A DNA stretch of 64,000 nt from assembly GCA_964187785.1 (NCBI GenBank), contig OZ076415.1:11532001-11596000 (forward strand), given 5' to 3'. The notes beneath the pieces were generated by a model. The model was not told the origin of the DNA. It worked only from the letters and a program-made list of their open reading frames with translations, and searched no databases. Source of the DNA: Amphiscolops sp. MND2022. Its lineage: Eukaryota. Below, piece by piece: positions 10,185 to 39,793 of this stretch; the stretch's first letter is position 1; every line of letters starts with the position of its first letter. Made by a program: the position numbers and the translations under genes.

Positions 10185-10513
10185 TCAGAACAGTGTGACA
10201 TCGAATTCGACGCCTTTTGACTCAAAAAGTTCTGCTGTGAGGAAACAATTGAAGAACACGCCTTCGGTGCCTGGATATCTGAACGTTGTCTGATGACGTT
10301 TCACAAAACAAGTGACGCATTTGCATCCAGGGTAGGGTCGGGATCCATCCTTGGCATACTTGGGCACAGCAACCGCGTTCACAGAGGGATCCTTGTCTTG
10401 TTCCTGTATCTCCCGGGCAAGTTGTGCGCATTCAAACAAACTGGAGACCATCGTAAACAATTTGAAGTACGATCCATCACCGAATCCCATTCCGCATTTG
10501 TCCAGGTTGACAT
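10185..10513 (-). CDS. Terminal exon C encoding a 6-Cys PAN/apple-like domain
   Basis: Acceptor aatttag|AT at 10513 (phase 1); DVNLDKCGMGFGDG...ECAQLA...NAVAV...GCKCVTCF...QTTFRYPGTEGVFFNCFL...stop; paralogous to the exons at 12471 and 23661. The PAN/apple-like call is from Cys spacing (inference). Confidence 0.75.
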
Positions 10514-11018
10514 CTAAATTAAGGTTGCAACATATGGAGATAAGATCACGTGGTAGCCGTTCATACAACCGAACGAACTTCAAGAAGAACGAATATCAAG
10601 CCCATCTGAACTTTGATTGGACGACGAAGTAAGTATCTAGCTCAATCAGTTTTACAGTTTTGTCAGATTACGTAATCAAACACCCGAAGTGAGCTGAACT
10701 GAAATTGAAAATTGAATGCATGCAAACGTAAGTAATGGTCCCTGGTATTTCAAGTTTTCGACATAAAATTCGTTCGTCTTTAAACTCGAACGGTTCGACT
10801 ATACAACCCATCACCAGATCACGTGTTGTACCATAATTACGTGGTATTTAATTATGCAATCAACTTGAAAACTATCACGAAGAGTTGAAATTTTGTCAAG
10901 CATGTTCAGGCGCATTTAGCATTTACTAGGCAACGATTCAGTAAATAACATTCAGCTCTTTTCTGTTCATGTTCAACAACCCCCGGAATATCAAACCTTG
11001 TGTAAAAAAACTTTAAAA

Positions 11019-11482
11019 AGGACCATGTCATCTATTCCCCCCCAGGTACACCTAGTTGGGAATATCCCCCCCAACACGAAAGCACATTTTGTTCTTGAAT
11101 AAAAATATTTCGCTAATAAGAGAATATTATATGAATGTCAATACTTATAGGATTGTCTCTACAACTGTTTGGACACTTCAGGCAAAAAAATTACCATAAT
11201 TTTTTGATGTTATTGTCCGAAATAGCAGAAATTCACGTTTGGAACTAGCTAAAATCGTATAAAAAGGCCCCTATTTAGCGCAAGTTTTGTCTGCTGTAAA
11301 ATCTTATGAGCAACTTTTAACTGACAGTCAATGTAATGGATAGGATTATGTCAACATCAATTATTTTATTGGACCAAAATTCCAACGCAAGCGATGTCGA
11401 CTTAATGGGATTTGAACCTTCTGTCTTATTCCCCCCCCCCGCCGCAGTTGGGGGGGGGGGGGTGAACAGATGACATGGTCCT
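11019..11482. mobile_element. Non-autonomous TIR element (Kolobok-like MITE, TTAA context)
   Basis: Left AGGACCATGTCATCTATTCCCCC and right GGGGGTGAACAGATGACATGGTCCT form an imperfect inverted pair; TTAA lies at or next to both ends; no ORF. Confidence 0.65.
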
Positions 11483-11989
11483 TTAAAAATTTTCCAAATT
11501 AGCCCTAACATTTGTGGCATCTTTTTCTACTACCAGAAATCAACTTCAAGGGTTTTTCGTTTGAACAAAACGTTTTCCAAACATTTTGACAGTGATTATG
11601 TTCGAATTGACTGTTCTACGTGACTCAAAAGCTAACGATGTCGATTTCATAATAAAGAATGCTTGCCTTCGTAAAAAATGGTGTTAACACAAATTATATC
11701 TGGACCCTAAATTGTTGATAATTGGACCCCAAAAGATAATTGACAGTTTCTGAAAAACAATGAATCAAAAAATAAAACCTTCGAAAACTGCGATTCGCTG
11801 TTTGGAATCACTGATTGAAAAGTTTTAGCTCATGAGTAAAAATTTGATTGAATGCTGCTAAACTGTGAAGTAACATCAGAACTGAGTTTTCAATTATTGT
11901 ATATATCGCTTTCTTTTTCAAACTCTACAACGCTTTTTTGACTCATGCTTTACTGGTTTTATGTATGACAGCAATTTGAAGTGATTAGT

Positions 11990-12471
11990 TTAACAAAAAG
12001 GATCCTTAAACGAAATACCTCGATCGCTCAGGTCCCGCATTGCTTGTCTTTCATCGTAAAAGATGTTTTTCGGAAGTAGAGAATCCGGAAGTTCTGATAT
12101 GGGTCTACCGTTTTGTTCATCTCCAGGAGCCAAAGTTGCAACTTCTTCGCTTCCTTCAGTTGGATTCAATTTCAACGTGACGTCATCAAGTGGGGTTAAA
12201 AAGCAGTTGAAGAACGTTGTTTCAGTGCCTGGATAACTGAACGTTGTCTGGTTTCGTTTCAGAAAGCATGTGAGACACTTACATCCAGGGTAAGGCTGCA
12301 GTTCATCGCTTCCAAACTTACTGACAGCAACCGCGTTCAACGAGGAATCTTTGTCTTGTTCTTGCATCTGTTTTGCAAGGTGTGCACATTCGTATACGTT
12401 GGAGACTTTCGCAAAGGGTTCTAGGTATGTTCCGTCGCCAAATCCCGACCCACAGTTTTCCACAGTGGCTT
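11990..12471 (-). CDS. Terminal exon B encoding a 6-Cys PAN/apple-like domain plus an acidic tail
   Basis: Acceptor caatttag|AA at 12471 (phase 1); ATVENCGSGFGDG...ECAHLAK...NAVAV...GCKCLTCF...QTTFSYPGTETTFFNCFL, then a ~70-aa tail to TAA. Confidence 0.75.
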
Positions 12472-12705
12472 CTAAATTGACAAAAAAAATTAGAAATGAA
12501 ATGAGAAATTTGAAAGCTAATTTTAAACATACGTTTCATTTCAGGCATCAAAGTTCCAAAGGATATTCCTCAGAATTTCGATGACTTGAAATAAAAATGT
12601 TTTAAAAAATTTCTAAATCAGCTTTCAAATTTCTCATTGCTTCAATATTGAATAGATCAAGACTAAGTGATGACCCCATTAGAGACGTTTTTGTTACTAT
12701 GCATT

Positions 12706-12897
12706 TGTTGTAACTCTCTTCTATAACTATAAATAGCATTGACAATTCAAACTTTATCCTTTCTTGTTTCGTATCTTTATGATAGTTCATCATCTGCATA
12801 CAATAGGCAGGTACTTGATAAAAAGAACATCAAACAGTATAATAATAATCATATAAATGTAGACTAATTAACATGTAAAGAGTCTGAGTCCTCTACA
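12706..12897 (-). repeat. 3' LTR of the Gypsy element
   Basis: Near-identical to 19346-19537; preceded on the minus strand by the PPT AGTGAAGGGGGGAA (12911-12898). Confidence 0.97.
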
Positions 12898-15076
12898 TTC
12901 CCCCCTTCACTATTGACTGTCGACTGGCCAATGGGGTTTTGTGTAGCTTCTGTATGGCGGTGGTTCCTCCAATGGTCCATATGTTTGTGGACGGATAACC
13001 GGTTCTCGCATTGGCTTTTGTCACAGTGTTCTTCTATCCGTGACGTCTGTTTGTTGTCTGCCTTTGGTTTTAGTTCTGATTGTTTGTTTCCATATCTGTT
13101 GGAGTTTGGCCCGGTGCTTCTTCCGAGTTCAGCCTTCCTACGGTGGTTCCTGTAATCATGACATATTGGGTTATTGTATCTGACAATTGGGTTAGTTTTT
13201 GGTAATCTTTTCGATCTGCGTACTTTTTTTTCTTCGCGTTTAACATCTGTTTCTAATTCAGTACTTGAGCTCAGGTTGTTGGCAAAATCTAGATCAAGGC
13301 TATTCTCTTCCCCCTCGTTAGGGAATGTTTTATCATTTTTAAACACCTTACCGTTTTCATCTCTAATAAAAAGCTCTTCGTTGGCTTGTTTCGCGTCGCT
13401 GATTGCAGGGTTGATTTCCGTGTCCGTCATGTTGGTTGGTATGGTGAGCGGGCCCGTGCTTTTGTTTGTACCCCCCGGTGTGCTGTGTGGTGAGCTTGAA
13501 TCCGACCGTTCTCGTTTCTGTACTGGTTTGCTTCGGCCGAATGTACCCTTTTTGACCGTAGTGTTGTCTGTTTGGTCCGGTGTTGTCTGGTAGTTGTTTT
13601 CTGGCGGCGTTGGCTCTGACTCGTTGTCTGACTCCAGTATATATGTTCTTCTTGCTTTGGATGGTGACTTCGTGAACCGGCCATCTGATCCTCTCGGCCC
13701 GGTTACTCTGTTGTTGTTGCAAACCTGGTTTAAATTATTAAGTGGTTCACTAATACATTTTTTATGTATTATTCTTCCATTCGGTGTTGTCACCGTATGT
13801 TTTGTTCCGGACACGGCTATGTTCGGTTTATCCATATAGGCACTTTCGAATTTTGATTTTTGATGTTTTTTCTCTAAGAAAAGGCATGGGTAGTTACTAA
13901 CTCCTTTATCGTTTTTCTTCGGCTTCATTGGTAGCTGGTCGGACACACCGCCGGCTCCACTGAATGAATATACCTGTAAGGTATCTGGTTTTGCTGAAAT
14001 GAAATTTTCCGTTAGTTTCTTCAAGCTATCTAAATTTAGTAGGTTACTAACTTCCGTGTTTAGACTTCGGCCGTAGTGTAGTTCAAAAGCTGATTTTTTC
14101 AGTCTCGTGTGTAGTGTTTTACGCATTATTTCTAGAGCTATATCTAGAGCTTTTCCAAAACGTTCTCCGGCTTTTAAGTTTGTTAAGAGATTTTCTTTGA
14201 GTGTTCTGACTCCTCTCTCTACTAAGCCTGTTGGGGTGTGGATAAACGGTGTGCCGTATATCAATTTGATGTAGTGTTTTTTACAAAAATCGCGGAAGAG
14301 GCGTCCTGTGAAAACGGTTGCTTTATCCGTTCTGATCGTTTTCGGTATCCCATTTAGTTGGATATCCTGTTCGATAAATTTTACCGCCGTTTCTCCGTCT
14401 GTATTTTTGCAAAAACTGGCTGCCGGCCATTTACTAAATCGGTCTATGGATAATAATATATAAAACCGGCGGTTATTTTCTGTAATCGGGCCAGTTGAAA
14501 TTCCTCGTTCGGATTGTTTACCGGTGGTAGATTGTTTTTCTCCGTATACGGTATGTTAGGTTTAATGCTCTTACCGGACATTTTGCATGATATGCAGGAG
14601 TCGCACTTTTTCTGAATGGCTTCAGTTATCCGTGGCCACCGAAAATGCCGGGCTGCTAGGGTCATCTTGTTGATGGCCGGGTGTCCTTTGTGTAGCAAGC
14701 TTATAACCGTGGTGCGTAGATTCTTTGGAACCACGATTTTGTCCTCCATCGACAATTTCCTCCTGACTGGTAGATATTCTTCGGGTATCAGCTCATGTTG
14801 CTGTCTTTCCAGACATACTAGTGTTTTTAGCAGGCTGGCGTCGTTCGTCGTCTCTGTCATAAGCAGCTGTAGGTCGGTAGAAAAGTTTTTCTCCGTTTCT
14901 CGCACTGCTTGTTCCAAATTCCAGTCGTTTTGTTCTTCAGCGGCTATTTTTGGAGCGTGCTCCATCTTCACGTATTGGACGCTCTTTACTCCGACATAGC
15001 GTGCCCAATTTATTGCCGGTACTTCTAAGATTGATGGGTCTTGATCGGTGTCGGTGTCTATTTCGCCTTCCTCCAT
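12864..15076 (-). pseudogene. Gypsy integrase and long C-terminal extension (frameshifted)
   Basis: HKGHPAINKM...CDSCISCK (HHCC zinc motif); GLVERGVRTLK (integrase core E); split across ORFs 14444-15076 and 12864-14264. Confidence 0.9.
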
Positions 15077-15660
15077 CGGCGTTGTCTGGATGTAATCTTG
15101 TTGAGATGATCATTGTTGGACTGGAGTGGGACGGTCCACGTCCCAGAATGGATCAACAGTCCATTGCTCGCTGTGTCTAGTGGGTGGTACAAAGCCTCCC
15201 GTCTGTTTGGGGCTGATTCTTTGTCTAAGGTCTGCTGTTTCGCGGTTTTTCATAATTTGTTGCAGTCTTTCTTCTATCACATTCCTTTCATTGCGTAAGA
15301 ATTTTGGTTCGTGATAGCGTTTCCATTTTCCCCCGGTTAGTCGATAAATCCCGGGTTTAACGATTTCTCGCCAGCGGTTTATCAATTCAATTGTTTCCGC
15401 GGTTGAGTTTGCTGCTTCGATTTCGTTTATTGTATTTGCATCCATTGTCAATTTGATGCTTTGGCAGTGTTTTTGTTTAAAGCGTGTTAACGTATCAGTG
15501 TTAAGGCAATCAATGGCAGTTCGTCTATGTGTGTCGCTGGTCCGTGGTTTGTTATTTGCTGTGCGTTCGCTTTTCTCCGTTCTGTTCTCTGATTGGTCAG
15601 TGTGGTTGCTAAGGCAACCATATTTGGAGATAAAGTTGTAGTGCGGTAATATGTTGTTGA

Positions 15661-17262
15661 TTACATATTCTTCGTCGTATGCGTCATCTGTTTGCGGTGG
15701 TAGTATCTGAGATAATCCGTGAGTGCTAAATGTTTACCGGCTATATGGTGTACGTTAATATTGAAATGTGCTAGTCGGTCAAGCCACCGTGTTAAGCGTG
15801 CGCTGTAAATTTTATTGGACCGGTTCCGTTTAATTAATGGTTCTAGTGCCTGGCGATTGGTTAAAAGTTTGATCGGTTTTCCGTAAATGTATAAACGGAA
15901 GTGTTCTAAACCCCATACTACCGCCAATAATTCAAGTTCATTTATTGCATATTTCTTTTCGGTGTCTGAAAGGAAACGACTCGCGAAACCAATCGGTTTT
16001 AATTTCCCGTCCGGTTGTTCTTGCCATAGGGTTGCCCCCAAGCCTTTTGTGCTTGCGTCCGTTGTTATCACGTTTGGGTAATCTGAGTTGTAGTGAGCCA
16101 AACACGGTATCTCCGTGATCTTTTGTTTTAAGTTTTCGAATGCTTGCGTGTGTTCTTCCGTCCGTATCCAATCATTCTTTTTTTTCAGTAACTGTCTCAA
16201 GCTATCGGTTTGGGCGTAGAGGTTGTCAATATATTTTGACAAGTATTGAATGGCTCCCAGAAATGATTTTAGTTCTTTTTCATTTTTTGGTTGCTTTAGT
16301 TCTTTTATGGCTAACAACTTGTCTTGAAGTGGTCGGATACCGGCCTGGTCAATTTTGTGGCCTATCCATTCAATTTCCGTTTTGAAAAGTTCGGACTTGT
16401 TTTCACTCAAGCGGTATCCGGCTTTTTCTAGTCTGGTTAGGACGTCAATCAATTCTTTTTTGTGTTCTTCCTTTGACCCTTTGGTTACGACGATGAAGTC
16501 ATCTAACCACGCTGGATGTTTGGTATTCAGTGTTTGGTCGATCTTCTCCTGAAAAACCGTTGGTATATCCGCTAGACCGTAAAAGCCTTTTAGAAAGCGG
16601 TAGTAACCGGTAAAATTTCCCTTGATTACGGCGAATATGCACAAGTTTCTAGCTTCTTTTGATAACAGTAGTTGTCCGTATGCGTAGTCTAAATCGAATT
16701 TCGAAATCCATATCTCATCTTTTGGGCCATCTGCTATTTTTCTTGATATCCGTGAAATCAATTTCTTCATGTTAGGCATTTGTGCCTTTCTTTTCACGGT
16801 TATTTCATTCAATTGTTGTGAATCTAGGGCGATTTTTATTGATTTGTCTTTCTTTACCGTGATCACGGCTGGGCTTACGAAGCAGTTTTCGTCAATACTG
16901 TTGGCTTTTTCGATGTGTCCTTGTTTTATTAGTTTTTCTATTTCCTTCCCCACCGATTGTTGGAGGTGAATCGGTATTGGCCTTCCTTTCTGTTGTATCA
17001 GTTTCGCGTATTCTTTTAGTTGTATCTTTACTTCCAGTCCGTTTACTGTATGGTTCTCGGTGAAAAGTTTCTTGAATTTCGTTTTCAATGATGTTATGTC
17101 TGGGTCTTCTTTTATTTGTTGTTTTTGTGGGACGGTTTTGCCCGTCTCCAGCGTTATTCCCAGTTTTTTCATCCAGTCTAGGCCTAGTAATGGGTTGGTT
17201 CTGTTAGTTGTCACTAAAATTTCCAGTTCTTTTTGTTTTCCGTCGATTTCCACTTTGGCCAT
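15661..17262 (-). pseudogene. Gypsy reverse transcriptase and RNase H
   Basis: KFDLDYAYGQL, FYGLADIPTVFQ, AWLDDFIVV (YxDD variant), TTDASTKGLGA and YAINELELLAVVWGLEHFRLY. Confidence 0.93.
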
Positions 17263-17268
17263 CGTTTT

Positions 17269-19283
17269 TCATTCAAATTGTATCCGGTTATCATTTACAT
17301 CTCTGTATTCCGTTTTTAGTGGATGTAATTGTGTAATGTTGTTGAATAGTGATTTTGGTATTAATGTTACCGGTGATCCGCTGTCGATGATGAATTTGAT
17401 TTGTCGTTTTTTGACCAATGCGGTGATTGTGAAGAAGTCCGGTCCATTGTTGTTTATTGATCGTGTTGAATGGATCTTTTGTTTCACTGAATGGATTGTG
17501 TTCGGTGTCCAATCGTCTTCATTCGCGCTACTTGTCTCTTCTTCCATTATATGGTTCACTTTTATTTGTGAGGCAACATTTGGCAAAGTGGCCTGTTTTT
17601 CCGCATTTTGCACACTTCTTTCCTCTGGCTGGGCATTCATGTTGTCTTGACCAGTTTGGTGCTCCGCAACGGTTGCAATCAACTTTTTTGAATTTTGTCG
17701 GTTTTTCCGGTTGTTCTTTTGTTGGTTTTATTTTACGTTCATTCAAGTAACGTATTTTCTCCTCTTCTGTTTCGGGTGAGTCATTTAGTTTCATTAGAGT
17801 GCACAGGCAAGCCTTATTTGCTCAAAGCGCAACATAGTGCGTTCAATACCTCGGATTCCACGACCATACCTTTAACCGTGCAAAATTGGCAAATTACGTC
17901 ATTTGTCCCGGATTCCACGGATTTAGTCGTGGATTCCAGTAACAAATGCTTAGCTGTACGAACTGTCGGCATGCAGCGGTGTCCCGGATTCCACAAAAAC
18001 GTAAGTTTTGCGAAATGAACCAATCAGATTGCAGAAATCATAAATTTCCTGGATTCCACGACTTTATGCTTGACGCGATACGCGGCATCTCTCCTTTAAT
18101 TAAATTCAAGTGGTAGACTGAACAAACATAATATTATGCACTACTTTTCGTATATTAATTCAAAATGATTCAGACAATCACACCAATATCACACAAAATT
18201 TTTAGAATTTTCAGTTTAGTACCAGTTTTGAACAAACTGCCAGGTCATCACAATCTCCCATTTTTTAATGACATGCTTCATTTTTGGTACCAGTCACGAG
18301 TATCTCTATTCGTACTTTTTGAATTTTTCGTGTCAATCAAAACAGTTTCCTTTGATATAAAATTGAATTAATTTAAAATGATTACTCAAAATCAGCGGAC
18401 CAATCAGAGAGCAGCGGCAAGAGTGTCATTATAGCAGCAGTATTGGCGTGGAATCCAGGACAAGCACTGTCGTGGAATCCAAGACACGCTTAACATCAAA
18501 GAGAAATTTTGTCCTGGATTCCACGACTTTTCTCAATTTTCGTGTCCCGGATTCCACGAAAACAGCAAAATAGCTTGCCTGTGCACTGTAATGTTGTCGT
18601 AAGTGTATTCTAGTATTGCGTCGGTTATTGCTTCTACCGACATGTCACTCTTTCTGATTTTTTTCTTTAGGTCGTAGTCTCCGGTTGATTTTCCGATGAC
18701 TGACAAGAATTTTGATGCTAGAAGTTCTGCCGCGGTTATTGTTTCAAATTAGCAGTTTTTTTTTCAATTTCTAGTGTTCATTTCCACACGTCTGCTGCGG
18801 ATTCACCATCTTCTCGCTTTAGGTCAAAGAAATCGGCTCTACTATGTTGTACGTTCCTTTCCGGTGTGAAGTGTAGTCGGAAAAGTGTGTAGAGTTTATA
18901 CAATGGTAGTGAGCTCGGTTCTCTTTCTCTGATTGTTTTTGTCATTTCCGCGTTCTGTCCAATTGCCCAGATGAAAATATCTTTTATTTCTGTTTCGAGT
19001 TGGTCACGGTATTGTGTCAGTATCTCTTTGTTGTTTGTCATGGTTGATAGGTCAATTTCTTTCGTCATTTTTATGTATTGGACAAATTTTCTCCACCACA
19101 GGTTTGCACTGGTGTGGTCTGGTCGTGTTTCTCCAGTGTGGGAATGGTCAATTTCTGAGTACAGGTCCGGTCTGCCGTTCTGTTCATTGTGTCGTTCGGC
19201 AATGTTTGGTTGGCTTGCCGTGTACCCGATGATGACAGTATGGTGTTTCCAATTCTTGGGTCTTCTTCCGTGTTTTCATCCAT
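17269..19283 (-). pseudogene. Gypsy gag (zinc knuckles) and aspartic protease, frameshifted and interrupted by a MITE
   Basis: CNRCGAPNWSRQHEC and CAKCGKTGHFAKC knuckles; FIIDSGSPVTLI protease motif. Confidence 0.88.
17797..18588. mobile_element. Tc1/mariner-type MITE nested in Gypsy gag
   Basis: TIRs (G)AGTGCACAGGCAAGC and GCTTGCCTGTGCACTG; TA at 17795-96 and 18589-90; internal GGATTCCACG subrepeats in both orientations; removing the element and one TA restores gag TTLMKLNDSP. Confidence 0.9.
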
Positions 19284-19335
19284 ATCTTCTTTCTGGATGT
19301 TTTGTATTTGTATTGTTTAGCTTTAGTTCTAAGCT

Positions 19336-19345
19336 GACTGCGCCA
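19336..19345 (-). promoter_or_regulatory. Primer-binding site of the Gypsy element (tRNA-Ser type)
   Basis: TGGCGCAGTC directly after the 5' LTR; complementary to a tRNA 3' end GACUGCGCCA, as I recall for invertebrate tRNA-Ser. Confidence 0.8.
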
Positions 19346-19537
19346 TGTTGTAACTCTCTTCTATAACTATATATAGCATTGACAATTCAAACTTTATTCT
19401 TTCTTGTTTCGTATCTTTATGATAGTTCATCATCTGCATACAATAGGCAGGTACTTGATAAAAAGAACATCAAACAGTATAATAATAATCATATAAATGT
19501 AGACTAATTAACATGTAAAGAGTCTGAGTCCTCTACA
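19346..19537 (-). repeat. 5' LTR of the Gypsy element
   Basis: Direct repeat of 12706-12897; TGTAGAGG...TACAACA on the minus strand. Confidence 0.97.
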
Positions 19538-19921
19538 GCATTACCATAACAATTTGAAAAAATATTTGAATAAATCGTACAATAAAGCTTTTACACAAGT
19601 GTAAATTTGCAGGGTTAGATTTTCGGTCGTCGAAAAATCGATCTTTCAATCTTTACAACAATGGTTGTTTTCAGTATATTCTCATCTAAATGATAAGCAT
19701 TCATCATAGCTGTGAAAACCATAACTTTGTGTTTCGGAACCAAAAACCTGCTTTAAAACTTCTGCCGTATCGGAGACGAAAGAACTGGTGATTTATACTT
19801 CAATGTTTTCTACCTTGAACCATGTTACCTTTGAAAACACTTCTTGTGGAGGGAGCTAGCTCCTAAAATAAAAATTTCTCTAGAATTTTTTTCATAAAAC
19901 ACCACCCAAACAGCATTTTTA

Positions 19922-20185
19922 CTAGTTAGGCTTCCGAGCAAATAGATCAAATAGAGGTAATAGAAGGTCGTTAGTAGTCACTTTACCTAGAAGACTCAAT
20001 TCTTGCATCTCCTCTTTTTCATGAGCGATAATGTCAGTCGGTTGAAAGCCAGCAAGAGCAGTCGTTGTTTCGAGCCTTTCATCTTCTGTGGTTGGTCCAT
20101 AACTGGGTCTTTTGTCATTAGCTTTTGACGTAGTCGCTATTTGATTGTCAATTGGAGGTTCAATGCCCAAGTCAAATTCCAATGT
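19922..20185 (-). pseudogene. Possible orphaned C-terminal tail related to exon B
   Basis: FQPTDIIAHEKEEMQELS weakly resembles LLPKNIFYDERQAMRDLS of exon B; the upstream part runs into an interspersed repeat and no acceptor AG is seen. Confidence 0.3.
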
Positions 20186-20949
20186 TATTTTTAGGTATGT
20201 TTTTAATTTTTGGTAGAGGTTAATCGGTTTAGGGGGAACCCAGCCAGAAACTTTTTGTGAATTTGCGAAACCGGACGAGACTAAAGGCCCCCATTTCAAT
20301 TTTTTCAGCTTGGTGAGATTTTTTGAATTCTTTTTAATGTCTCCAAAGGATCCCGCTTCATTTTTTATCATATTTTGCAAGAACCTGGATTTTCAAAAAG
20401 CCCAAATAGTCCCTTTTACAATTTTCGGTATTTTGAGATTTTTCAAAATGAATGTTTTTGGTCTTACAGTATTGACAAAGTTTTAACAATAGTGTCTTTT
20501 TGCATATTTAAAAAACTTTACTCTTTTGAACCTTGAGTGGGGCGTCGAATTAGGCAGTTCCGTTTTCGTTCGTTTTCACAGAAATGAAAAATGTGTTTAC
20601 GGTGATCCCTTTCTTTTTCAACAATTTTTGTTTGAAAATACCAGAAGGACATTGCTGGAAATAACATGTCACTTAGCGGTGCCTAGACATACTGCCTTGC
20701 AAAGCGGATTAGGATCTAACGTGTTAAAATCTAAACCAATCAAATGTCTCAGATTGACAAGGATGGGGTGTTGTTCTCCACCAATCAAAAAGCGTTAGAT
20801 CTCATTCCATTAGCTTTTATTCTGTTCTCCCTGTTGACTTGGGCTGCGAAACATGTTCACAATGGTTCGAATTCTGCGCTAGGCTAAATCTTTACAAAGA
20901 TTGAAAAAGACCAAAGGGTCACCCTTTGGTGTTAAAATTTTAGCCGACC

Positions 20950-22433
20950 TTCTGAGTTGGTCGAAGATCTAGAGTGCCTGCTGAGGCGCCAACGGGACCC
21001 TTTCGATTCGTTTACAATTTTACCTGACTTGAAAAACTGAATGATACGCACTATCAATGAGAGATCAAGAACAAACAAAAAGATAGTAGTGGAGCGTGAA
21101 AAAAGCGGACTATCAAATATCCTATTGGCACTAAGGTCAGAAAAAGGGGCAGACGGAAAATCAGCATTCGAGAAACACATGGGTAGAAAACCAAACACTC
21201 TGAAATCAGCTATGATTGAAAAGTGTATTTTAGATAAAGACCCCAGAATAGACATCGAGCCAGAAGATTTCAGCGAAGAAGCTGACTCCACAATTCTAGT
21301 GCGAGAACGCGTACGCGGCACTAAACTGGAAGGTGCCTTTAAAAAGGTCAAAGGCAACATTGTGGACGAATCACAGAACACGCTGAAAAACCTGCCCAAA
21401 ACAGGAAAGTTTCATCGTGTCAAAGAGAGATGTGGCGAAAATGCCAGACAAAGAGAAAACACCACAAAAGAAGAAAGGGTCAAAACAAGAGAAAAGACCA
21501 AAAACCATGAAAACGCCAGTTTATGAATTCTTACCAAATCCGGAAGACGTGCCTAATGGAGAAAACAGAGCCAGCTGTTCATGGCAACAAGAAATGGGAC
21601 AAGCAACTTCCAAACAAAGTGCAGAAAAGGAACCACCAACAAAAATCTGCAAAGAAGAAAACATGAACATGGAAGAAGAAAGAAAAGAAGAGGTAGAAAG
21701 CAACGAGCCTAAAGAAGAAGAACAGAGCGAGCCACAAACGGAAACAACTACAACTGCACCCATCCAAGGGGAGATAAAATGGGAAATGTCCCAAGCACGG
21801 ACATCGAAAAGGAACAAAAAGAAACCCAATTGGTTGGGACAGAACGTTATGGTCACAAAGATCGAAGCAACATCCAGCCAAGATGAGGAAAGCCTACCAA
21901 GTGTATACGAAATACACAAATCTTAAACACTCAACAAACTTTAGCCAAACTTCAATTTTGTTTAACTGGTAAAACAAACCGTTACCCCAAATTTATGTTG
22001 TTGTGCATAAGGAAACTAACATTTCCTAACATTTAACAAATGAGTTGTAGTAACTCATAACTTTTAACAGTGCTGTATTTATCCCCAAGTTAATTGTCAA
22101 AAGAAATTAGCAACAAACATTGAATTAACCACTAATCTTCAATTGCGCAGTTTATTGGATAACCAAGAACCAATGAAAAGTGAGAACATTATGATGTATT
22201 AAATTTATTTTAAAAGTATGTACTATGTATATCTGGTTTCAAAATGTAAAGTGTAGTTCCCCCTTGTGCCCTCACAATTAGCGAGGGGAGTGTGATAGAG
22301 CTAAGTCTATTAATTGCCTTGCTGTACTTAAATACCATGAGAAAACTGTCAGTGTGAAAGAATTAATTACATAACATAATAACAACCTGCCAAACTGAAG
22401 TGAACTGGCAAAACAGAAGAAACTGCCATAACA
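20950..22433 (+). mobile_element. 3' fragment of a second Gypsy family (integrase tail, PPT, LTR)
   Basis: MIRTINER...ILLALRSEKGADGKSAFEKHMGRKPNT integrase C-terminal region; PPT AGCGAGGGGAG at 22280-22290, then TGTGATAG...CCATAACA (22291-22433). Confidence 0.7.
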
Positions 22434-23287
22434 TCAGAATACGTACAATTCAATAGTTTGCTAACTACATTGTTTTCCTCGAGTTCGTCAGTCGTTAACA
22501 AGATCAAAGAGTCCCTTGGGGGTCTTTTTTGACGCAATGCGTCGTTTTCATTTTTTCAGTTCACTGGGGTCTTCCTTTTTGTTGTTTTTTTGAAAAATAC
22601 GTTTTCAAACAAAAAATGTCTTTTTTTGAAAAAAACTTGATTTCATCAAACGGTTTTCCATTTTTGATGCTTTTAGATAGAACTAAAGTCTTTAGCATAA
22701 ACGGTTCTCTTTTCAGGCGCTTTGCCACTGTAAGGCGTTTAAAATTTCCACAAAATTGTTTAAAAATCCACTAATTAGACCCAATAGGGCGGAAGGCATC
22801 TAACCAGTGTCGAACTTCTGTATTTTTCCAACTGATCTACAAAAAAAACATTTTCTGATTTAACGTCGACGTTAAAGTAGATCTATTTCAGGAAAAATGC
22901 GCTACATACGAACTGGTGACGTAACATCCGAAGTTTATTGGATCTTGTATCCTAATTGTCTTGGATTGTGAGCAATTACCAGGAAGAGTGTGGAGTATTT
23001 GAACAATAAGTACTATTTGAACAATAAGGACTATTTGAACAATAATACCAATTTCACTTTTACCACAGTATCAACTAAAATATTGTACATACGTAATGTC
23101 CTTGAGCGTAATGTTCGCCGGGCGTATTGTCCTAGAACCGAATTTTTTAGTTGGTAAACACTGATATTGTAGTTTCAATTCAATTTCCCGTCACCTGCCT
23201 GTCTTTGCCCTCAACATTGGCAATCCTATAATTCAAAAATATAACCCCCTAGCAGTCTGTATTATTCATCTACTCGGGATTTTGTAT

Positions 23288-23661
23288 TCATTCGACTCGG
23301 GTTTTAAATTTTGATTGGTAACCATCAAACAATCGTGGAGGCACAATTTCAACATCACTCCCTTCAGCTGTAGTTTCATTCTCTGCAGCTAGAAAACAAT
23401 TGAAGAAAACCGCTTCGGTGCCTGGATAGCTGAACGTTGTCTGATCTTGTTTGGCGAAGCAAGTGAGGCAATTGCATCCAGGGTAAGGTGGCAATCCATC
23501 TTTGCCAAACTTGTTCACAGCCACCGCGTTGAAATGGAGACCAGGAGCCAGTTTCAGTATCTTTTTAGCCAAGGCTGCACATTCGCAGAGACTTGAAACA
23601 TCATCCAAAACTTCAAATGTCCCATCCCCAAATCCTAATCCGCACTTTTCCAGGTTGGGAT
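23288..23661 (-). CDS. Terminal exon A encoding a 6-Cys PAN/apple-like domain
   Basis: Acceptor ttttag|AT at 23661 (phase 1), compatible with the mucin exon donor CAAG|gtatgt; DPNLEKCGLGFGDG...ECAALAK...NAVAV...GCNCLTCF...QTTFSYPGTEAVFFNCFL. Confidence 0.8.
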
Positions 23662-24200
23662 CTAAAAAGTTTGAAATAAGATTTGTTTTGAGCAAATACG
23701 AGATTTCAAAAATGAAAGCTGTCTCAGTTCGCATAAGAGTGCCAAATGTAGGTTATCACAATTTTGTGTTAATAAGTATCTCGTTTTTTTCTAACTTAGC
23801 TTTAAACATGGATTTAGCTGATTTTTAGCGGACTCTGCGAATGCAAAAAGATGAATCGGTTAAATCATGTTGCCCATGTGGTGTGGAACGATTGCCAAAA
23901 AATGCGCTGAAAGTCACTAGAACAAATATTCAAAAAGGTGCAATTAAAATCGCCCCGCTCTAAAACTTGAAATGCTGCATGATTTGGGGATATGTTAGTG
24001 ATCTCGAATGCAGACGCTAAGAATGGGATTTTTGAAAGAATGTACTTGAAAAACCAAAAACCCACAAATGCCGCATTAAAACAGTAATTTCCTGAAATTT
24101 TCTACAAGAATAGTACTCGAAAGCTCTTTGTTTTTCATTTCATGAGTTTAACGTTTTGCAAACGAGCTTCCGAAAATTTATGTTATGGGGTAAAACATAC

Positions 24201-27200
24201 CTTGAACACTCAATTGTTCCATTTGTTCGTATTCACTTCCCGTCTGCGAACTACCAACATGAGATGTATTTTCCCTCCTTTCATCATCATCATCGACACC
24301 ATTATCATCATCGTCAAGTGCTTTTGAAGTAGGTTCAGCAGCTGCCTCACTAGCCTCAGGTTCAGTTATGCTTTTATCGCTCTCGGTTTCTGAAGACGCC
24401 GTGGTCGTGGTTGTGGTTGTTGTGGTGTCCCGACTGTTTGTGATATCAGCTGTAGCTTCTCCGTTCTCTACAACATTGGATGTTTCGGTAATCGTCTTCT
24501 CCGTTGTTTCGCTTCCTTCCGGTAGTGTTGTTTCGGGTGATTTTCCTGCCACGTCTGACGATGGGGTGGTAGTTGTTTCAGTTTTCGAACCACCTCCGCC
24601 TTCAGGTGTTGGTTTAGCAGATTCGTCAGAATTTGGTGTTTGTGTAGTTTCTCGCTCAGTTGTCTCACTAGCCTCAGGTTCAGTTGCGTTTTTATCGCTC
24701 TCGGTTTCTGAAGACGCCGTGGTCGTGGTTGTTGTGGTGTCCCGACTGTTTGTGACATCAGCTGTAGCTTCTCCATTCTCTACAACATTGGATGTTTCGG
24801 TAATCGTCTTCTCCGTTGTTTCGCTTCCTTCCGGTAGTGTTGTTTCGGGTGATTTTCTCGCCACGTCTGACGATGGGGTGGTAGTTGTTTCAGTTTTCGA
24901 ACCACCTCCGCCTTCAGTTGTTGGTTCAGCAGTTTCGTCATCATTTGATGTTTGTGTAGTGTCTCGCTCATTTGTCTCACTAGCCTCAGGTTCAGTTGTG
25001 TTTTTACCGCTCTCGGTTTCTGAAGACGTCGTGGTCGTGGTTGTTGTGGTGTCCCGACTGTTTGTGACATCAGCTGTAGCTTCTCCATTCTCTACAACAT
25101 TGGATGTTTCGGTAATCGTCTTCTCCGTTGTTTCGCTTCCTTCCGGTAGTGTTGTTTCGGGTGATTTTCCTGCCACGTCTGACGATGGGGTGGTAGTTGT
25201 TTCAGTTTTTGAACCACCTCGGCCTTCAGTTGTTGGTTCAGCAGTTTCGTCATCATTTGGTGTTTGTGTAGTTTCTCGCTCATTTGTCTCACTAGCCTCA
25301 GGTTCAGTTGCGTTTTTATCGCTCTCGGTTTCTGAAGACGCCGTGGCCGTGATTGTGTTTGTTGTGGTGTCCGGACTGTTTGTGACATCAGCCGTAGCTT
25401 CTCCATTCTCTACAACTTTTGATGTTTCGGTAATCGTCTTCTCCGTAGTTTCGCTTCCTTCCGGTAGTGTTGTTTCGGGTGATTTTTCCGCCACGTCTGA
25501 CGATGGGGTGGTAGTTGTTTCAGTTTTCGAACCACCTCCGCCTTCAGTTGTTGGTTCAGCAGTTTCGTCATCATTTGGTGTTTGTGTAGTGTCTCGCTCA
25601 TTTGTCTCACTAGCCTCAGGTTCAGTTGTGTTTTTACCGCTCTCGGTTTCTGAAGACGTCGTGGTCGTGGTTGTTGTGGTGTCCCGACTGTTTGTGACAT
25701 CAGCTGTAGCTTCTCCATTCTCTACAACATTGGATGTTTCGGTAATTGTCTTCTCCGTTGTTTCGCTTCCTTCCGGTAGTGTTGTTTCGGGTGATTTTCC
25801 TGCCACGTCTGACGATGGGGTGGTAGTTGTTTCAGTTTTCGAACCACCTCCGCCTTCAGTTGTTGGTTCAGCAGTTTCGTCATCATTTGGTGTTTGTGTA
25901 GTGTCTCGCTCATTTGTCTCACTAGCCTCAGGTTCAGTTGTGCTTTTATCGCTCTCGGTTTCTGAAGACGCCGTGGTCGTGGTTGTTGTGGTGTCCCGAC
26001 TGTTTGTGACATCAGCTGTAGCTTCTCCATTCTCTACAACATTGGATGTTTCGGTAATCGTCTTCTCCGTTGTTTCGCTTCCTTCCGGTAGTGTTGTTTC
26101 GGGTGATTTTTCCACCACGTCTGACGATGGGGTGGTAGTTGTTTCAGTTTTTGAACCACCTCGGCCTTCAGTTGTTGGTTCAGCAGTTTCGTCATCATTT
26201 GGTGTTTGTGTAGTTTCTCGCTCATTTGTCTCACTAGCCTCAGGTTCAGTTGCGTTTTTATCGCTCTCGGTTTCTGAAGACGCCGTGGCCGTGATTGTGT
26301 TTGTTGTGGTGTCCGGACTGTTTGTGACATCAGCCGTAGCTTCTCCATTCTCTACAACTTTTGATGTTTCGGTAATCGTCTTCTCCGTAGTTTCGCTTCC
26401 TTCCGGTAGTGTTGTTTCGGGTGATTTTTCCGCCACGTCTGACGATGGGGTGGTAGTTGTTTCAGTTTTCGAACCACCTCCGCCTTCAGTTGTTGGTTCA
26501 GCAGTTTCGTCATCATTTGGTGTTTGTGTAGTGTCTCGCTCATTTGTCTCACTAGCCTCAGGTTCAGTTGTGTTTTTACCGCTCTCGGTTTCTGAAGACG
26601 TCGTGGTCGTGGTTGTTGTGGTGTCCCGACTGTTTGTGACATCAGCTGTAGCTTCTCCATTCTCTACAACATTGGATGTTTCGGTAATTGTCTTCTCCGT
26701 TGTTTCGCTTCCTTCCGGTAGTGTTGTTTCGGGTGATTTTCCTGCCACGTCTGACGATGGGGTGGTAGTTGTTTCAGTTTTCGAACCACCTCCGCCTTCA
26801 GTTGTTGGTTCAGCAGTTTCGTCATCATTTGGTGTTTGTGTAGTGTCTCGCTCATTTGTCTCACTAGCCTCAGGTTCAGTTGTGCTTTTATCGCTCTCGG
26901 TTTCTGAAGACGCCGTGGTCGTGGTTGTTGTGGTGTCCCGACTGTTTGTGACATCAGCTGTAGCTTCTCCATTCTCTACAACATTGGATGTTTCGGTAAT
27001 CGTCTTCTCCGTTGTTTCGCTTCCTTCCGGTAGTGTTGTTTCGGGTGATTTTTCCACCACGTCTGACGATGGGGTGGTAGTTGTTTCAGTTTTTGAACCA
27101 CCTCGGCCTTCAGTTGTTGGTTCAGCAGTTTCGTCATCATTTGGTGTTTGTGTAGTTTCTCGCTCATTTGTCTCACTAGCCTCAGGTTCAGTTGCGTTTT

Positions 27201-28517
27201 TATCGCTCTCGGTTTCTGAAGACGCCGTGGCCGTGATTGTGTTTGTTGTGGTGTCCGGACTGTTTGTGACATCAGCCGTAGCTTCTCCATTCTCTACAAC
27301 TTTTGATGTTTCGGTAATCGTCTTCTCCGTAGTTCCGCTTCCTTCCGGTAGTGTTGTTTCGGGTGATTTTTCCGCCACGTCTGACGATGGGGTGGTAGTT
27401 GTTTCAGTTTTCGAACCACCTCCGCCTTCAGTTGTTGGTTCAGCAGTTTCGTCATCATTTGGTGTTTGTGTAGTGTCTCGCTCATTTGTCTCACTAGCCT
27501 CAGGTTCAGTTGTGTTTTTACCGCTCTCGGTTTCTGAAGACGCCGTGGTCGTGGTTGTTGTGGAGTCCCGAATGTTTGTGACATCAGTTGTAGCTTCTCC
27601 ATTCTCTACAACTTTGGATGTTTCGGTAATCGTCTTCTCCGTTGTTTCGCTTCCTTTTGGTAGTGTTGTTTCGGGTGATTTTCCCGCCACGTCTGACGAT
27701 GGGGTGGTAGTTGTTTCAGTTTTCGAACCACCTCCGCCTTCAGTTGTTGGTTCAGCAGTTTCGTCATCATTTGATGTTTGTGTAGTGTCTCGCTCATTTG
27801 TCTCACTAGCCTCAGGTTCAGTTGTGTTTTTACCGCTCTCGGTTTCTGAAGACGTCGTGGTCGTGGTTGTTGTGGTGTCCCGACTGTTTGTGACATCAGC
27901 TGTAGCTTCTCCATTCTCTACAACTTTGGATGTTTCGGTAATCGTCTCCTCCGTTGTTTCGCTTCCTTTTGGTAGTGTTGTTTCGGGTGATTTTCCCGCC
28001 ACGTCTGACGATGGGGTGGTAGTTGTTTCAGTTTTCGAACCACCTCCGCCTTCAGTTGTTGGTTCAGCAGTTTCGTCACCATTTGGTGTTTGTGTAGTTT
28101 CTCGCTCATTTGTCTCACTAGCCTCAGGTTCAGTTGCGTTAATACCGCTCTCGGTTTCAGAAGACGCCGTGGTCGTGGTTGTTGTGGTGTCCCGACTGTT
28201 TGTGACATCAGCTGCAGCTTCTCCATTCTCTACAACTTTGGATGTTTCGGTAATCGTCTTCTCCGTTGTTTCGCTTCCTCCTCGTTGAGTTGTTTCGGGT
28301 GAATTTTCCATTTGTTGAACTGTTGTTGCATTCTCAGGTCCGGTCTGTTTTCCAGTCTCATTTACTTTTCCTTTTTTCGGTTCTATTGTGGTTTTGTCCA
28401 ATACATCTCGAGACGATCTATTTACCAGTCTAATGATATCTGACGGCTGTTTCCCATGCTCGGGTTTGCTGTTTTTTCTACCAGTGTTCGAACTTCCTTG
28501 AAATGTCTTCTTTGGTT
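24201..28517 (-). CDS. Giant mucin-like (Thr/Glu/Ser-rich) tandem-repeat exon, 1439 codons, phase 1-1
   Basis: Stop-free frame; acceptor ttttactttcaatactgtttcag|AA at 28517 and donor CAAG|gtatgt at 24201/24200; about 12.5 repeats of 104-106 aa with NAT/NTT sequons. Confidence 0.85.
24340..28290 (-). repeat. Coding tandem repeat, 312/312/318-bp units with a 942-bp higher-order period
   Basis: Shadow-ORF offsets 24468, 24780, 25092, 25410, 25722, 26034, 26352, 26664, 26976, 27294, 27606 and 27918. Confidence 0.95.
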
Positions 28518-29427: not shown

Positions 29428-29465
29428 TGGTGTCCAGACCAGGATTCGAACCTGGGTTACTGCGG
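29428..29465 (+). promoter_or_regulatory. Extended primer-binding site (complement of a tRNA-His-like 3' half)
   Basis: Reverse complement CCGCAGTAACCCAGGTTCGAATCCTGGTCTGGACACCA has a CCA end, an intact T arm and a CCGCAG-YAA context like eukaryotic tRNA-His (from memory). Confidence 0.75.
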
Positions 29466-29491
29466 TATCGGTACCTTCTCTCAACGTACCC

Positions 29492-30517
29492 ATGACGAGT
29501 TCAACTACATCAACCCGAATCATTAACACTCCGAACCAGACAGCCCCGCAGCAACCGTCTGCACTATTCAAGCCAACAACGTCAGTACCTGTCAGCCAAA
29601 TACTTCCTAATTTGTCCGCATGGACAATTCCGACAGTAACCGTCAACCCTCCCTCGCAACTGAGAACACCTTTACAAATGAGCCCACCGACGATTACCGC
29701 CACAACGACAACATCAGTTGGAATCACCCCAGTAACCACGATGCCCGTAATGCCTGTAACTCATGGAGGGACATTCTTCTACGTACCACCGTCAGCGGTT
29801 ACAGTTCCGACCCCAATTCCTACAATTGTTCAGCCGTCGTCATCATTCCCTAGTGCAACTGCATTACCATTTATACCATCAGGATCGAGTGCAGTACTGC
29901 AACCAAGCCCTACACACTTCGGTCTTCACGAGGTTGCGCAACTACTAGCTTCAACAAAGAAAGACCACCTACCAGAGTGGAAATTGTCTGAATACAATGG
30001 CGACCCGATTCGTTGGCACGAATGGTTCGGACAATTCAAGAGCGCCATTGACTCGGCTCAACTGTCAGATGATGTCAAGCTAACTTATCTGAAAACTCTG
30101 GTAACTGGAAAAGCCAAAGTCGCAATAGCAGAATTCGCCTACTGCGGAGCTATGTACAAGGACGCCCTCAAGACCCTTGAGCGGAAGTTTGGCCAACCAC
30201 AGGCAGTGGTAACAGCTTACCTGGACAAACTAGCTAACGTTCCACCTGTGAAGATGCATAACAGCGAAAGCATCATAAGCTCTTCCGCAACAGTTAGCTC
30301 ATTGGTTGGGGTATTCCGTTCGCTTAATTATGTCCAAGACTTATCTAGCGCATCCTTACTGGGTCAAGCAGTGCAGAAGCTTCCGCCGAATATGAAAGAA
30401 GCATGGTCGATGCACACTGTAAAGCGCAGCCTAGACCGACCGACATTGATTGATTTCAATGATTGGCTGAAACATAAAGCCGAAGCCCACGAACGTATGA
30501 AAACGGCTTCAGGCTAA
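29492..30517 (+). pseudogene. BEL gag N-terminal part
   Basis: Thr/Pro-rich leader, then LPEWKLSEYNGDPIRWHEWFGQF; ends at a premature TAA, with gag-pol continuing in 30525-32651. Confidence 0.85.
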
Positions 30518-31281
30518 GTCAAAGGTGACGAAAATGTTCCCAACACCGCAACTAAAACCAAGACAACTTCCAAAGTCGACGAACTGTGTAGCTTGCAAAG
30601 AGAATTACCCTCTGTGGAGATGCCCTGTGTTTAGAAAGAAAACACCCACAGAAAGAGCAAAACTAGTTGCTGACAACAAGCTTTGCTTCTCTTGTTTTCG
30701 AGTTAATCATTCGTTCAGACAGTGCCCCCAGCCTCGCAAATGCACTAAAGAAGGTTGCGATAGCTCACACAACACCTTTCGTCACGGTGCCGAACGAATT
30801 TTCCAGAGAAAATCTGAAACGCCGAATAGAAAAAACCCCAAAACTTCCACCTGTATTGGAACGACTAAGATGAACGATCAAGTTGCAGCGAGCTCAGGCA
30901 TGCCTTCAGTTGTAGATGTTAAAGGACTCCTTCAAATAACAGAAGTAGAATTACACTCCAACGAACAATCAGAAAGGGTTTTTGCACTCTGTAATTCAGC
31001 CTGCAGCCACTCTTGGATTTCATCAAGGCTAGCTGACAAACTGACTGTAAAGGCCACACCGACGAAGTTGACAGTGCATGGCATCAACTGCCATCAAGTT
31101 GTAAACACTCAAATGGTGGAGCTCAAGTTGACACCGGTTCATTCGGGTGGCTCTTGCTCCTCTTTTGCCATCAAACCAAATGGGAGAGACGATCTTCAAG
31201 TTGGAACCGATGTTATAGACGTAGAATCACTGAAAACAATGTACCCCCATTTAGAACCAATTCCTTTGAAGAAGTACAGAT

Positions 31282-37200: not shown

Positions 37201-37581
37201 CCGTCAATGGACACTAGCAGCTGTATAATAAAATAGAAAGGTTCATCGCCCGCCGGGGTACCCCATCAAACGTATGGTCAGACAACGGAACAAATTTCAT
37301 TGCCAGTGAAAAAGAACTCCTCCAGAACATTGCAAACTGGAACCACCAAGTTTTGACCGATGCTCTCGTCAAGAAACGTATCTCGTGGAAGTTTAACCCA
37401 CGTAGCGCACCACATCATGGTGGTGTTTGGGAACGCGTTGTCAGGAGTTTCAAACTCGTTTTTTACGCTGTTCTTGGAAACCGACGCTTAACCGACGAGA
37501 TTTTAATAACATTTTGCCTTGTGGAGCAAAGTTTGAAAGCACGACCACTGGTACCAGCCAGCTCTGATGCTACTGATTTGG
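31282..37581 (+). repeat. Internal direct tandem duplication (2 x 3150 bp) of the BEL RT-RH-IN region
   Basis: ATGCT microhomology at 31282 and 34432; the matching position in the second copy is 37582; the junction reads SSDATDLD|ADVDMILGQ in frame. Confidence 0.95.
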
Positions 37582-38178
37582 ACGCTCTGACCCCAAATCA
37601 TTTCTTGTTGGGAACCCCGGGTTCCGTCTTACCGTCGCATCAGCGAGCCGAAATAGACCAACGCAAGCGGTACGTGCGTGCACAAGCTTATTCTGACATT
37701 ATCTGGAGTCGATGGTTGAAAAAATATGTGCCCTCACTCAACAAGCGTTCTAAGTGGCCTAGTCAACCGGAAAGACAACTTAAAACGGGAGACCTAGTTT
37801 GGATAATCGAACCGTCGAGTCCAAGAGGACATTATCCACTAGCTCGCGTGACAAAGTTGAACTTCGGCAGCGATGCCATAGCACGTTCTGCCGAACTGAA
37901 GACCAACACCGGACGTCTCGTTCGCCCCGTTGTAAAACTGTCCCCAGCCCTTCCCCTTCCCGAAGCCGAACCCTTTTAGTTGCATCACCGTATACTTAAC
38001 TCCGATGTCATGAAACAAAATTATTCTCAATATTAAAATGAGCCATGTAACTTTATCCATTTCCCAACATGTAAACATAAACCCATGTAATGCGTCTCCG
38101 TAAAAACAATTTTATATATATATATATACTTTTTGTTTTTGCAAATAATAGTGTTCACACCTTCTTGGGCCCGGAGGA

Positions 38179-38554
38179 TGTTGACAACTCGTTTATTAGC
38201 ATATTAGCAAATTAAATTGGATTGATTTCAAGCATCCGTAGCATAGCGGTAAAGTGTATGACCGATATTCGTACTCGACCGGCGTGGGTTCGATCCCCGG
38301 TATTGACCGATCTTTATGAAACCGCAAAAAAGGTAAAATTTGATTTTTCAAATATTATTCGAAATTTGCTATCTCGAAATTGTTTAATAATATTTGTAAA
38401 CAACTATGTGTTCATTTCTCAGCCTTGTTATTTTGTACGAATTAAATGTTTTGTCATTGAGACCGATAATACATTGAGAAATAGAGTATTGTTTCCTTTC
38501 ATATTTTCAACAAAAAGAAACGAGATATAACTGTCGAGAGTTATATTTCTTTTA
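38179..38554 (+). repeat. 3' LTR of the BEL element
   Basis: Begins TGTTGAC directly after the PPT-like GGGCCCGGAGGA; its 3' 176 bp match the 5' LTR remnant. Confidence 0.88.
38232..38305 (+). ncRNA. tRNA-like segment with Pol III A and B boxes inside the BEL LTR
   Basis: GCATCCG followed by A box TAGCATAGCGG (38239-38249, tRNA position 8) and B box GGTTCGATCCC (38287-38297); D and T stems pair partly, anticodon and acceptor stems are degenerate. Confidence 0.6.
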
Positions 38555-39659: not shown

Positions 39660-39793
39660 CTAACGGTAGCAGCCGAAGGAATGGTTGCAGCCATTGGGCA
39701 CACACGATGCCCTGAAGTTGTCTGCACATATCAAGCTGTCACAAACAGGCCCACAGTTAACCAACTCTTTCTTCCCGTTGGGACAGTAACCGC
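39660..39793 (-). CDS. Small Cys-rich terminal exon (TIL-like N-terminal Cys spacing)
   Basis: Acceptor tgttctgttttag|GC (phase 1); GYCPNGKKELVNCGPVCDSLICADNFRASCVPNGCNHSFGCYR*; 7 Cys in 43 aa. Confidence 0.55.

Follow-up and report, generated by a model that had tools for sequence, protein, structure and literature searches.

The question raised by this locus is how one mucin-like exon can be followed by three related exons that each seem able to close the reading frame, and whether a single stalk may in this way receive different C-terminal heads. The locus lies in a stretch of 64,000 nucleotides (nt) of contig OZ076415.1 from the acoel Amphiscolops sp. MND2022 (assembly GCA_964187785.1, positions 11,532,001 to 11,596,000 of the forward strand), called the window here; positions are counted from its first letter. 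An earlier note on this DNA had proposed that the stalk exon is spliced to any of three PAN/apple-like terminal exons. There is one minus-strand gene of this kind in the window, spanning at least 48641 down to 10185, and it encodes a putatively secreted protein. Behind its stalk exon stand three intact copies of a terminal domain exon, A, B and C, all of which have been kept by selection. Judging from the sequence, we give alternative use of these copies as last exons, in some form, a probability of about 0.5.

The stalk exon closes with GTTCAAG/GTATGT (here and below the stroke marks the splice boundary), its last base being 24201 and its phase 1, as had been read before. The three following exons also lie on the minus strand and all open in phase 1: exon A at 23288..23661 (acceptor ctttttag/AT at 23661), 540 nt behind the stalk donor; exon B at 11990..12471 (caatttag/AA at 12471), 11.7 kilobases (kb) away; and exon C, the last copy, at 10185..10513 (taatttag/AT at 10513), at a distance of 13.7 kb. 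In all of them the donor G completes an Asp or Glu codon and five further residues lead to the motif CGxGFGDG, so that the acceptors do stand about six residues before this motif when read from the minus strand. The encoded domains of about 95 amino acids (aa) are 52-62% identical to one another, and the six Cys and the NAVAV and QTTFxYPGTE..FFNCFL motifs to which the earlier note drew attention are invariant in the three translations. Based on a six-frame hidden Markov model search of the whole genome, the domain occurs in exactly three copies, A, B and C, in the 1.07-Gb assembly, and unitigs from four DNA runs confirmed the B/C region without difference (9400-12900 examined). It had also been stated that each exon ends in its own stop with a different tail. 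The stops are indeed found at 23288, 11990 and 10185, behind an open tail of 68 codons in B and of 17 codons in C; the claim of different tails holds only in part, since the A and B tails align significantly (z 4.3, p 0.003) over about 50 nt or 16 aa, interrupted by an in-frame gap of 3 nt, and the stops of these two may be reached by reading through a donor. No alignment was obtained between A and C or between B and C in the tails and 3' flanks, and short identical words shared by the A and C tails, tried as a sign of homology, were not significant. A 22-nt tandem duplication (two copies, 86% matches) spans the stop of exon A at 23263-23305.

The copies are old, and every comparison that we made shows them to be constrained. 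Over a core of 96 codons, the ratio of non-synonymous to synonymous divergence (dN/dS) was 0.20 for A-B (dS 1.44), 0.30 for A-C (dS 0.90) and 0.18 for B-C (dS 1.42); synonymous divergence is saturated, and non-synonymous change lies far below synonymous change in all pairs (Fisher p 1e-5 to 5e-10). None of the three exons has a frame break, and all are equally distant from the outgroup, the homologous domain of the acoel Convolutriloba macropyga, to which A, B and C show 34-35% identity. Similarity among the copies at the DNA level begins at most 10 bases from each acceptor and the flanks show none. Because dN/dS is low, the proportion of non-synonymous differences much smaller than that of synonymous ones and the outgroup distance equal, each copy has been held by selection through nearly all of its long history. 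In this lineage the terminal PAN exon was triplicated long ago, with all three copies under purifying selection nearly throughout. The low ratios, intact frames and equal outgroup distances rule out decayed tandem paralogues, which the earlier note had offered as the alternative to its proposal.

The body to which these heads belong was traced through that homologue. When 1.8 billion proteins were searched exhaustively with a profile, the only foreign relative was the cluster holding XP_075242959.1 (P0005; LOC142337545), an uncharacterized C. macropyga protein of 726 aa; a match to P0003 was a low-complexity false one. No transcript-derived protein was matched among the 5.8 billion or 1.8 billion sequences searched by profile and by word index; apart from the false one, the matches were open reading frame (ORF) calls from the genome itself and the C. 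macropyga cluster. XP_075242959.1 has the same order of parts as the gene in the window, namely signal peptide, SUEL lectin, Cys-rich module, repetitive stalk and C-terminal domain, the last with 33-34% identity, and its phase-1 introns are at matching positions, including a split G/AG codon six residues before the first Cys. Its stalk exon is of phase 1-1 and ends ACCG/GTGAGT, the terminal exon opens tttcag/AG, and the resulting RefSeq junction ...SGLT/ETQLGKCG is matched in position and phase by the acceptor of exon A. The two loci differ in that C. macropyga has one terminal domain exon (within 10 kb downstream) against three here, and in that its domain holds four Cys, the C-x-C pair being missing, against six. 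The C. macropyga frame stops two residues after NCFL, with AATAAA about 25 nt later. Since the PAN exon of the homologue is terminal, the copies began as terminal exons, which were at once usable by skipping.

With the homologue as a guide, two exons were recognised in front of the stalk. A SUEL-type (galactose/rhamnose-binding) lectin exon of 303 nt lies at 48339..48641 on the minus strand, bounded by tttag/AC and ACCA/GTAGGT. It is 50% identical to XP_075242959.1 over 100 aa (tblastn) and belongs to the SUEL_Lectin family, matching PF02140 at 48.4 bits, above the gathering cut-off of 31.4; the homologue scores 40.6 bits. A Cys-rich exon of 129 nt with 8 Cys follows at 39665..39793 on the same strand (boundaries ttttag/GC and TACC/GTTAGT); it is 49% identical to residues 160-206 of XP_075242959.1 and no Pfam family matched it. 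All introns of the gene are in phase 1 and all known exons, including these two, are of phase 1-1. Both exons are single-copy within the window, and the statement of the earlier note that B and C have no separate signal-peptide or mucin exon in front of them stands: no signal-peptide-like first exon was found upstream of either in the window. Given that B and C each lack their own start, signal peptide and upstream exons, they could be expressed only via splicing to the phase-1 donors of this gene. For the gene as a whole no convincing signal-peptide first exon was found in the window. One stretch at 49775-49832 on the minus strand (MIIIKIFISQIVVS..., or MIIIKIFISQIVVSRFPFN plus one base, donor ATG/GTTGAA), which lies 1.1 kb from the lectin exon on its upstream side and has a phase compatible with that exon, is no more than a guess at such an exon.

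The stalk exon itself occupies 24201..28517 on the minus strand (4317 nt, phase 1-1) and opens at 28517 in phase 1 with ctgtttcag/AACCAAAG. It consists of 12.6 copies, 94% identical, of a Thr/Ser/Glu-rich unit of 312 nt (104 aa), has no Cys and contains 27.6% Thr, some of it in runs, 11.1% Ser (38.7% for both) and 16.2% Glu. Because Pro amounts to only 5.7% and Glu plus Asp to 22%, we describe it as acidic mucin-like. Long Thr/Ser-rich tandem repeats in a secreted protein place it with the mucins of the PTS (Pro/Thr/Ser) type, the signal peptide of the homologue pointing to secretion, while the parts of gel-forming mucins (VWD/TIL/C8, cystine-knot end) were not matched: Pfam gave nothing in the stalk and only SUEL_Lectin in the homologue. 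In C. macropyga the stalk is built of Pro/Glu-rich repeats of 16 aa. Between the two species (window 24201-28517, C. macropyga locus 2761-4023) the position and phases of the stalk exon are kept and its sequence and composition are not, which argues for a fast-evolving spacer.

How are the heads joined to this body? One donor, at 24201, is phase-compatible with the acceptors of A, B and C, and each of these exons has a stop, as is expected of alternative last exons. In the reading that we favour, exon A, which adjoins the stalk and has a weak internal donor only, would end one form of the messenger RNA, and the stalk donor would skip A in others to reach B and C, either as separate ends or joined B-C, so that the products of the gene would share the lectin-stalk body and differ in their PAN heads. 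That A ends a transcript is somewhat probable, because its internal donor is weak, the C. macropyga exon is terminal and a young element with long terminal repeats (LTRs), in sense orientation, is tolerated behind A. In that case B and C, being under selection, would have to be reached by skipping A. The element in question is an intact Gypsy-type LTR retrotransposon on the minus strand, sense to the gene, at 12706..19537, with Pfam matches to reverse transcriptase (RT) and RNase H. Its LTRs of 192 nt (12706-12897 and 19346-19537) are 99% identical, have TG..CA ends and are flanked by a 5-bp target duplication, GCATT; the distance from A to B had been about 4 kb before the element inserted. 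The element in the constitutive intron upstream of the stalk is antisense, and the different orientation of the element between A and B also favours alternative last exons.

Several observations weigh against this reading, and most of them concern the splice donors. As a ruler we used 16 introns of actin paralogues, fixed by comparison with an actin gene of this genome that lacks introns; since these introns show a much looser consensus than a human-type donor matrix assumes, that matrix was dropped in favour of one made from the 16 actin donors and three homology-fixed donors of the present gene (19 real donors). Three of the 16 actin donors are non-GT (GG or GC) and eight lack G at +5; in each of the 16 cases the exon itself ends in G. 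With donors as degenerate as these, the weak phase-1 site within exon A, GATG/GTTACC (between 23323 and 23322), cannot be dismissed in spite of its 2.9 bits, which lie below 16 of the 19 real donors (the lowest fifth) and at the 86th percentile of decoy GTs. The corresponding site of exon B, CGAG/GTATTT (between 12019 and 12018, phase 1), reaches 6.0 bits, mid-range among real donors and at the 97th percentile of decoys, and its intron hexamer is that of a real actin donor, CAG/GTATTT. The stops of A and B come 10 and 9 codons past these sites, as expected of intron read-through. For a tail as long as that of B to stay open by chance, the probability is 0.009 if counted up to the stop and 0.017 if counted up to the donor; such a tail is better explained if kept open as far as the donor. 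Concerning polyadenylation, the first AATAAA or ATTAAA appears 349, 620 and 1129 nt after the stops of A, B and C, about at chance density; in actin genes of this genome a canonical hexamer is found 15-170 nt after the stop in seven of nine. Canonical hexamers are remote from the stops of A, B and C alike and lend no support to a separate 3' end for each exon; because even C has none within 1.1 kb, they are uninformative as to which exon is terminal. Variant hexamers, CATAAA and AGTAAA, occur 30-45 nt behind the stop of B. PAN/apple domains are, moreover, commonly found in tandem, and the four sequencing runs found, all of DNA from one sample, give unbroken unitig cover of exons and introns alike.

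The same sites are the basis of the strongest competitor, which the earlier note did not consider when it placed variant heads on one stalk: the stalk and three intact, phase-compatible heads are there, and A and B may be joined in tandem. Here A and B would be constitutive internal exons of phase 1-1 ending at 23323 and 12019, their stops would be intronic, and the stalk of the protein would be followed by three consecutive PAN/apple domains, separated by linkers of 22 and 59 residues, with no choice among alternative ends. Such an arrangement agrees with the phase 1-1 character of all known exons of the gene, with the presence of a phase-1 G/GT 9-10 codons before both stops in a genome of degenerate donors, with the strength of site B and the length of its tail, with the equal constraint on the three copies, and with the distance of the poly(A) hexamers behind A and B. 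Factor XI, prekallikrein and TgMIC4 regularly carry their apple/PAN domains in tandem, and structures of these proteins are among the matches of our domain. It would, however, have to employ the poor site A, to gain two donors anew from an ancestral exon that was terminal, as in C. macropyga, and to carry an intact sense LTR element in a constitutive intron. We regard pure tandem inclusion as somewhat unlikely on balance. The strict form of alternative last-exon use proposed in the earlier note, in which the lectin/stalk body is spliced to any one of exactly three heads, each ending its own messenger RNA, is a tentative proposal and, on the sequence features at hand, a fairly unlikely one.

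Two other GT-containing features touch on the question of donors. The tail of A contains a second phase-1 GT, which scores -4.1 bits and is placed in coding sequence by its position within the stretch that aligns with B across the in-frame gap. In the conserved core of B there are two perfect GTAAGT hexamers in phase 1, at 12283 and 12322 of the minus strand (codons AGT-AAG and TGT-AAG), where about 0.16 would be expected per 480 nt; A and C have neither. They are probably unused because, owing to a poor exon side, they score only 4.3 and 1.7 bits with the genome donor matrix.

All readings besides alternative last exons and pure tandem inclusion are unlikely even when taken together. That only A is used now, B and C being relics silenced too recently to have decayed, for example by the Gypsy insertion, would fit the short distance of A from the stalk donor as compared with those of B and C, and the position of the 6.8-kb sense element with its nearly identical LTRs, 234 nt before the B acceptor. 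Against this, B and C were under selection during almost the whole of the divergence (dS 0.9-1.4), their acceptors, frames and six Cys are intact, and the B-C ratio of 0.18 would be impossible had both drifted for long; we consider silencing improbable. That B and/or C form a separate downstream gene for a short secreted PAN protein, with its own promoter and a small first exon, is very improbable in spite of the fact that short first exons are hard to find by eye and that of the main gene was also not located in the window, since neither the C-B interval nor the stretch from B to the LTR element contains a hydrophobic ORF that starts with ATG and has a phase-1 donor, candidates further up are in transposon debris or give TAA if joined to B, and both exons lack an in-frame ATG ahead of the first Cys.

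The nature of the heads was examined by sequence and by predicted structure. The label PAN/apple-like, given in the earlier note from Cys spacing, found no backing in sequence searches: the Pfam PAN models (PF00024, PF14295, PF08276) matched none of the four domain sequences at E up to 1-10, a sequence profile search of the PDB gave nothing at E = 10, and Pfam hits to EGF_alliinase and DUF1907 were noise below the cut-off. A first model of the domain made from three sequences was too poor to use (predicted local distance difference test score, pLDDT, of 49.7). From four sequences, AlphaFold2 gave a model of copy C of medium confidence (pLDDT 65.5, predicted template modelling score 0.61) with the element order beta-beta-alpha-beta-beta-beta (strands at 7-10 and 18-23, helix at 26-40, strands at 45-50, 67-73 and 87-91). 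The PAN/apple fold is a sheet of five antiparallel strands that packs on a single helix, in about 80-100 residues. When the model was compared by VIA-align with 48,161 representative chains, PAN/apple, MANEC or AMA1 types made up nearly all of its 25 best matches, with Z values of 3.4-6.7 over 69-81 residues, which fall in the range that the tool calls a common arrangement; the exceptions among these 25 were WSC-type domains (yeast Wsc1, Kremen), glyoxal oxidase and thyroglobulin. SML-2 (Z 6.7) and the fifth apple domain of TgMIC4 (5.9), both galactose-binding lectins, led the matches and were followed by the HGF N domain and plasminogen (5.5) and factor XI/kallikrein apple domains (5.4). AMA1, MANEC, an Eimeria PAN module and leech antiplatelet protein came at lower Z, and unrelated folds filled the list from Z 3.2 down. 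Foldseek on this better model gave no significant match (best E 0.37), though with the same enrichment in PAN, and the neighbours found with a language model were PAN clusters. Four Cys, at positions 7, 29, 69 and 90 of copy C, are invariant even when the C. macropyga homologue is included, and in the medium-confidence model they are placed where PAN disulfides could form, which tie the helix to the central strands and, in apple domains, link the N- and C-terminal Cys. In element order and fold the domain thus resembles the PAN/apple superfamily (plasminogen/HGF N, factor XI and prekallikrein apple, apicomplexan MIC4/SML-2/AMA1, MANEC), from which it differs in a C-x-C-x-x-C motif outside the classical Cys pattern and in the lack of a Pfam or PDB sequence match. 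With moderate confidence, the predicted structure indicates that it is PAN/apple-like by fold and not a member of the Pfam family; it would be a divergent member of the superfamily recognised only through its predicted fold.

Taken from end to end, the predicted protein would have a signal peptide, the SUEL lectin, the small Cys-rich module, a long O-glycosylatable acidic stalk and a C-terminal PAN/apple-like domain. The product would carry a lectin of the galactose/rhamnose type and, at the opposite end, one or more heads of PAN type, with a glycosylated acidic rod between them; its secretion, glycosylation and sugar binding, like its whole splice pattern, are deduced from the genome. In mucus or on the body surface it may act in carbohydrate binding or adhesion through both of its ends. 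A bridging or adhesive role is suggested because the lectin and PAN ends are held apart by a rod whose sequence is not conserved between the two species. SUEL/rhamnose-binding lectins include the sea urchin egg lectin, the rhamnose-binding lectins of fish and the N-terminus of latrophilin, in which a SUEL lectin stands in front of a Ser/Thr-rich stalk. The present gene shares with them a PF02140 match above the cut-off, but it has no olfactomedin, GAIN or seven-transmembrane (7TM) part and no tandem lectin repeats, and the partner of its lectin is PAN-like. We found nothing in the literature on this lectin-stalk-PAN protein or its splicing; the family is uncharacterized and has so far been seen in two acoel genomes only. 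More speculatively, the protein is a candidate for glycan-based adhesion or recognition in animals without most classical immune receptors.

Alternative or tandem use of duplicated exons is in itself an already known kind of event. The Drosophila genes lola and mod(mdg4) have a common 5' part followed by arrays of alternative 3' exons; their products are nuclear BTB proteins, and the tens of different ends, of zinc-finger or FLYWCH type, have been shown by RNA to be used. If exactly three heads are used here, the likeness would be a common N-terminal body joined to one of several tandemly duplicated, paralogous terminal exons for a binding domain, and the differences would be that there are three ends at most, that the product is secreted and that the array is known from genomic sequence alone. 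It would then be a lola/mod(mdg4)-style array in a secreted glycan-binding protein of an acoel, which could diversify the targets bound at the distal end of the stalk, such as mucus partners, prey, microbes or algal symbionts. A triplicated last exon is a natural case for two outcomes, in which the copies either become interchangeable heads or gain donors and turn into a tandem domain array. The second route would be unusually easy here because splice donors of this genome carry very little information.

Other features of the window are minor. The antisense element in the intron between the Cys-rich and stalk exons is a BEL/Pao retrotransposon on the plus strand at approximately 29450..38300, with ORFs of gag (DUF1759), RT and integrase type. 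Two nearly identical ORF sets, at about 30.5-35.3 kb and 34.4-38.0 kb, each represent its RT/RNase H/integrase region, the result of an internal duplication or of a nested copy. Between B and C, at approximately 11020..11500, there is a short repeat of very high copy number (word depth 10^4-10^5 in the four DNA runs against a baseline of 22-94). The unitigs of all four DNA assemblies break there, it shows many internal deletion variants and it contains the sole AATAAA behind B; it is probably an element similar to a short interspersed nuclear element or a miniature inverted-repeat transposable element. Beyond exon C, a single-exon ORF of 637 aa with N-terminal leucine-rich repeats at 1706-3619 of the plus strand is convergent to the lectin gene, and its position places the 3' end of the latter between about 4 kb and 10.2 kb.

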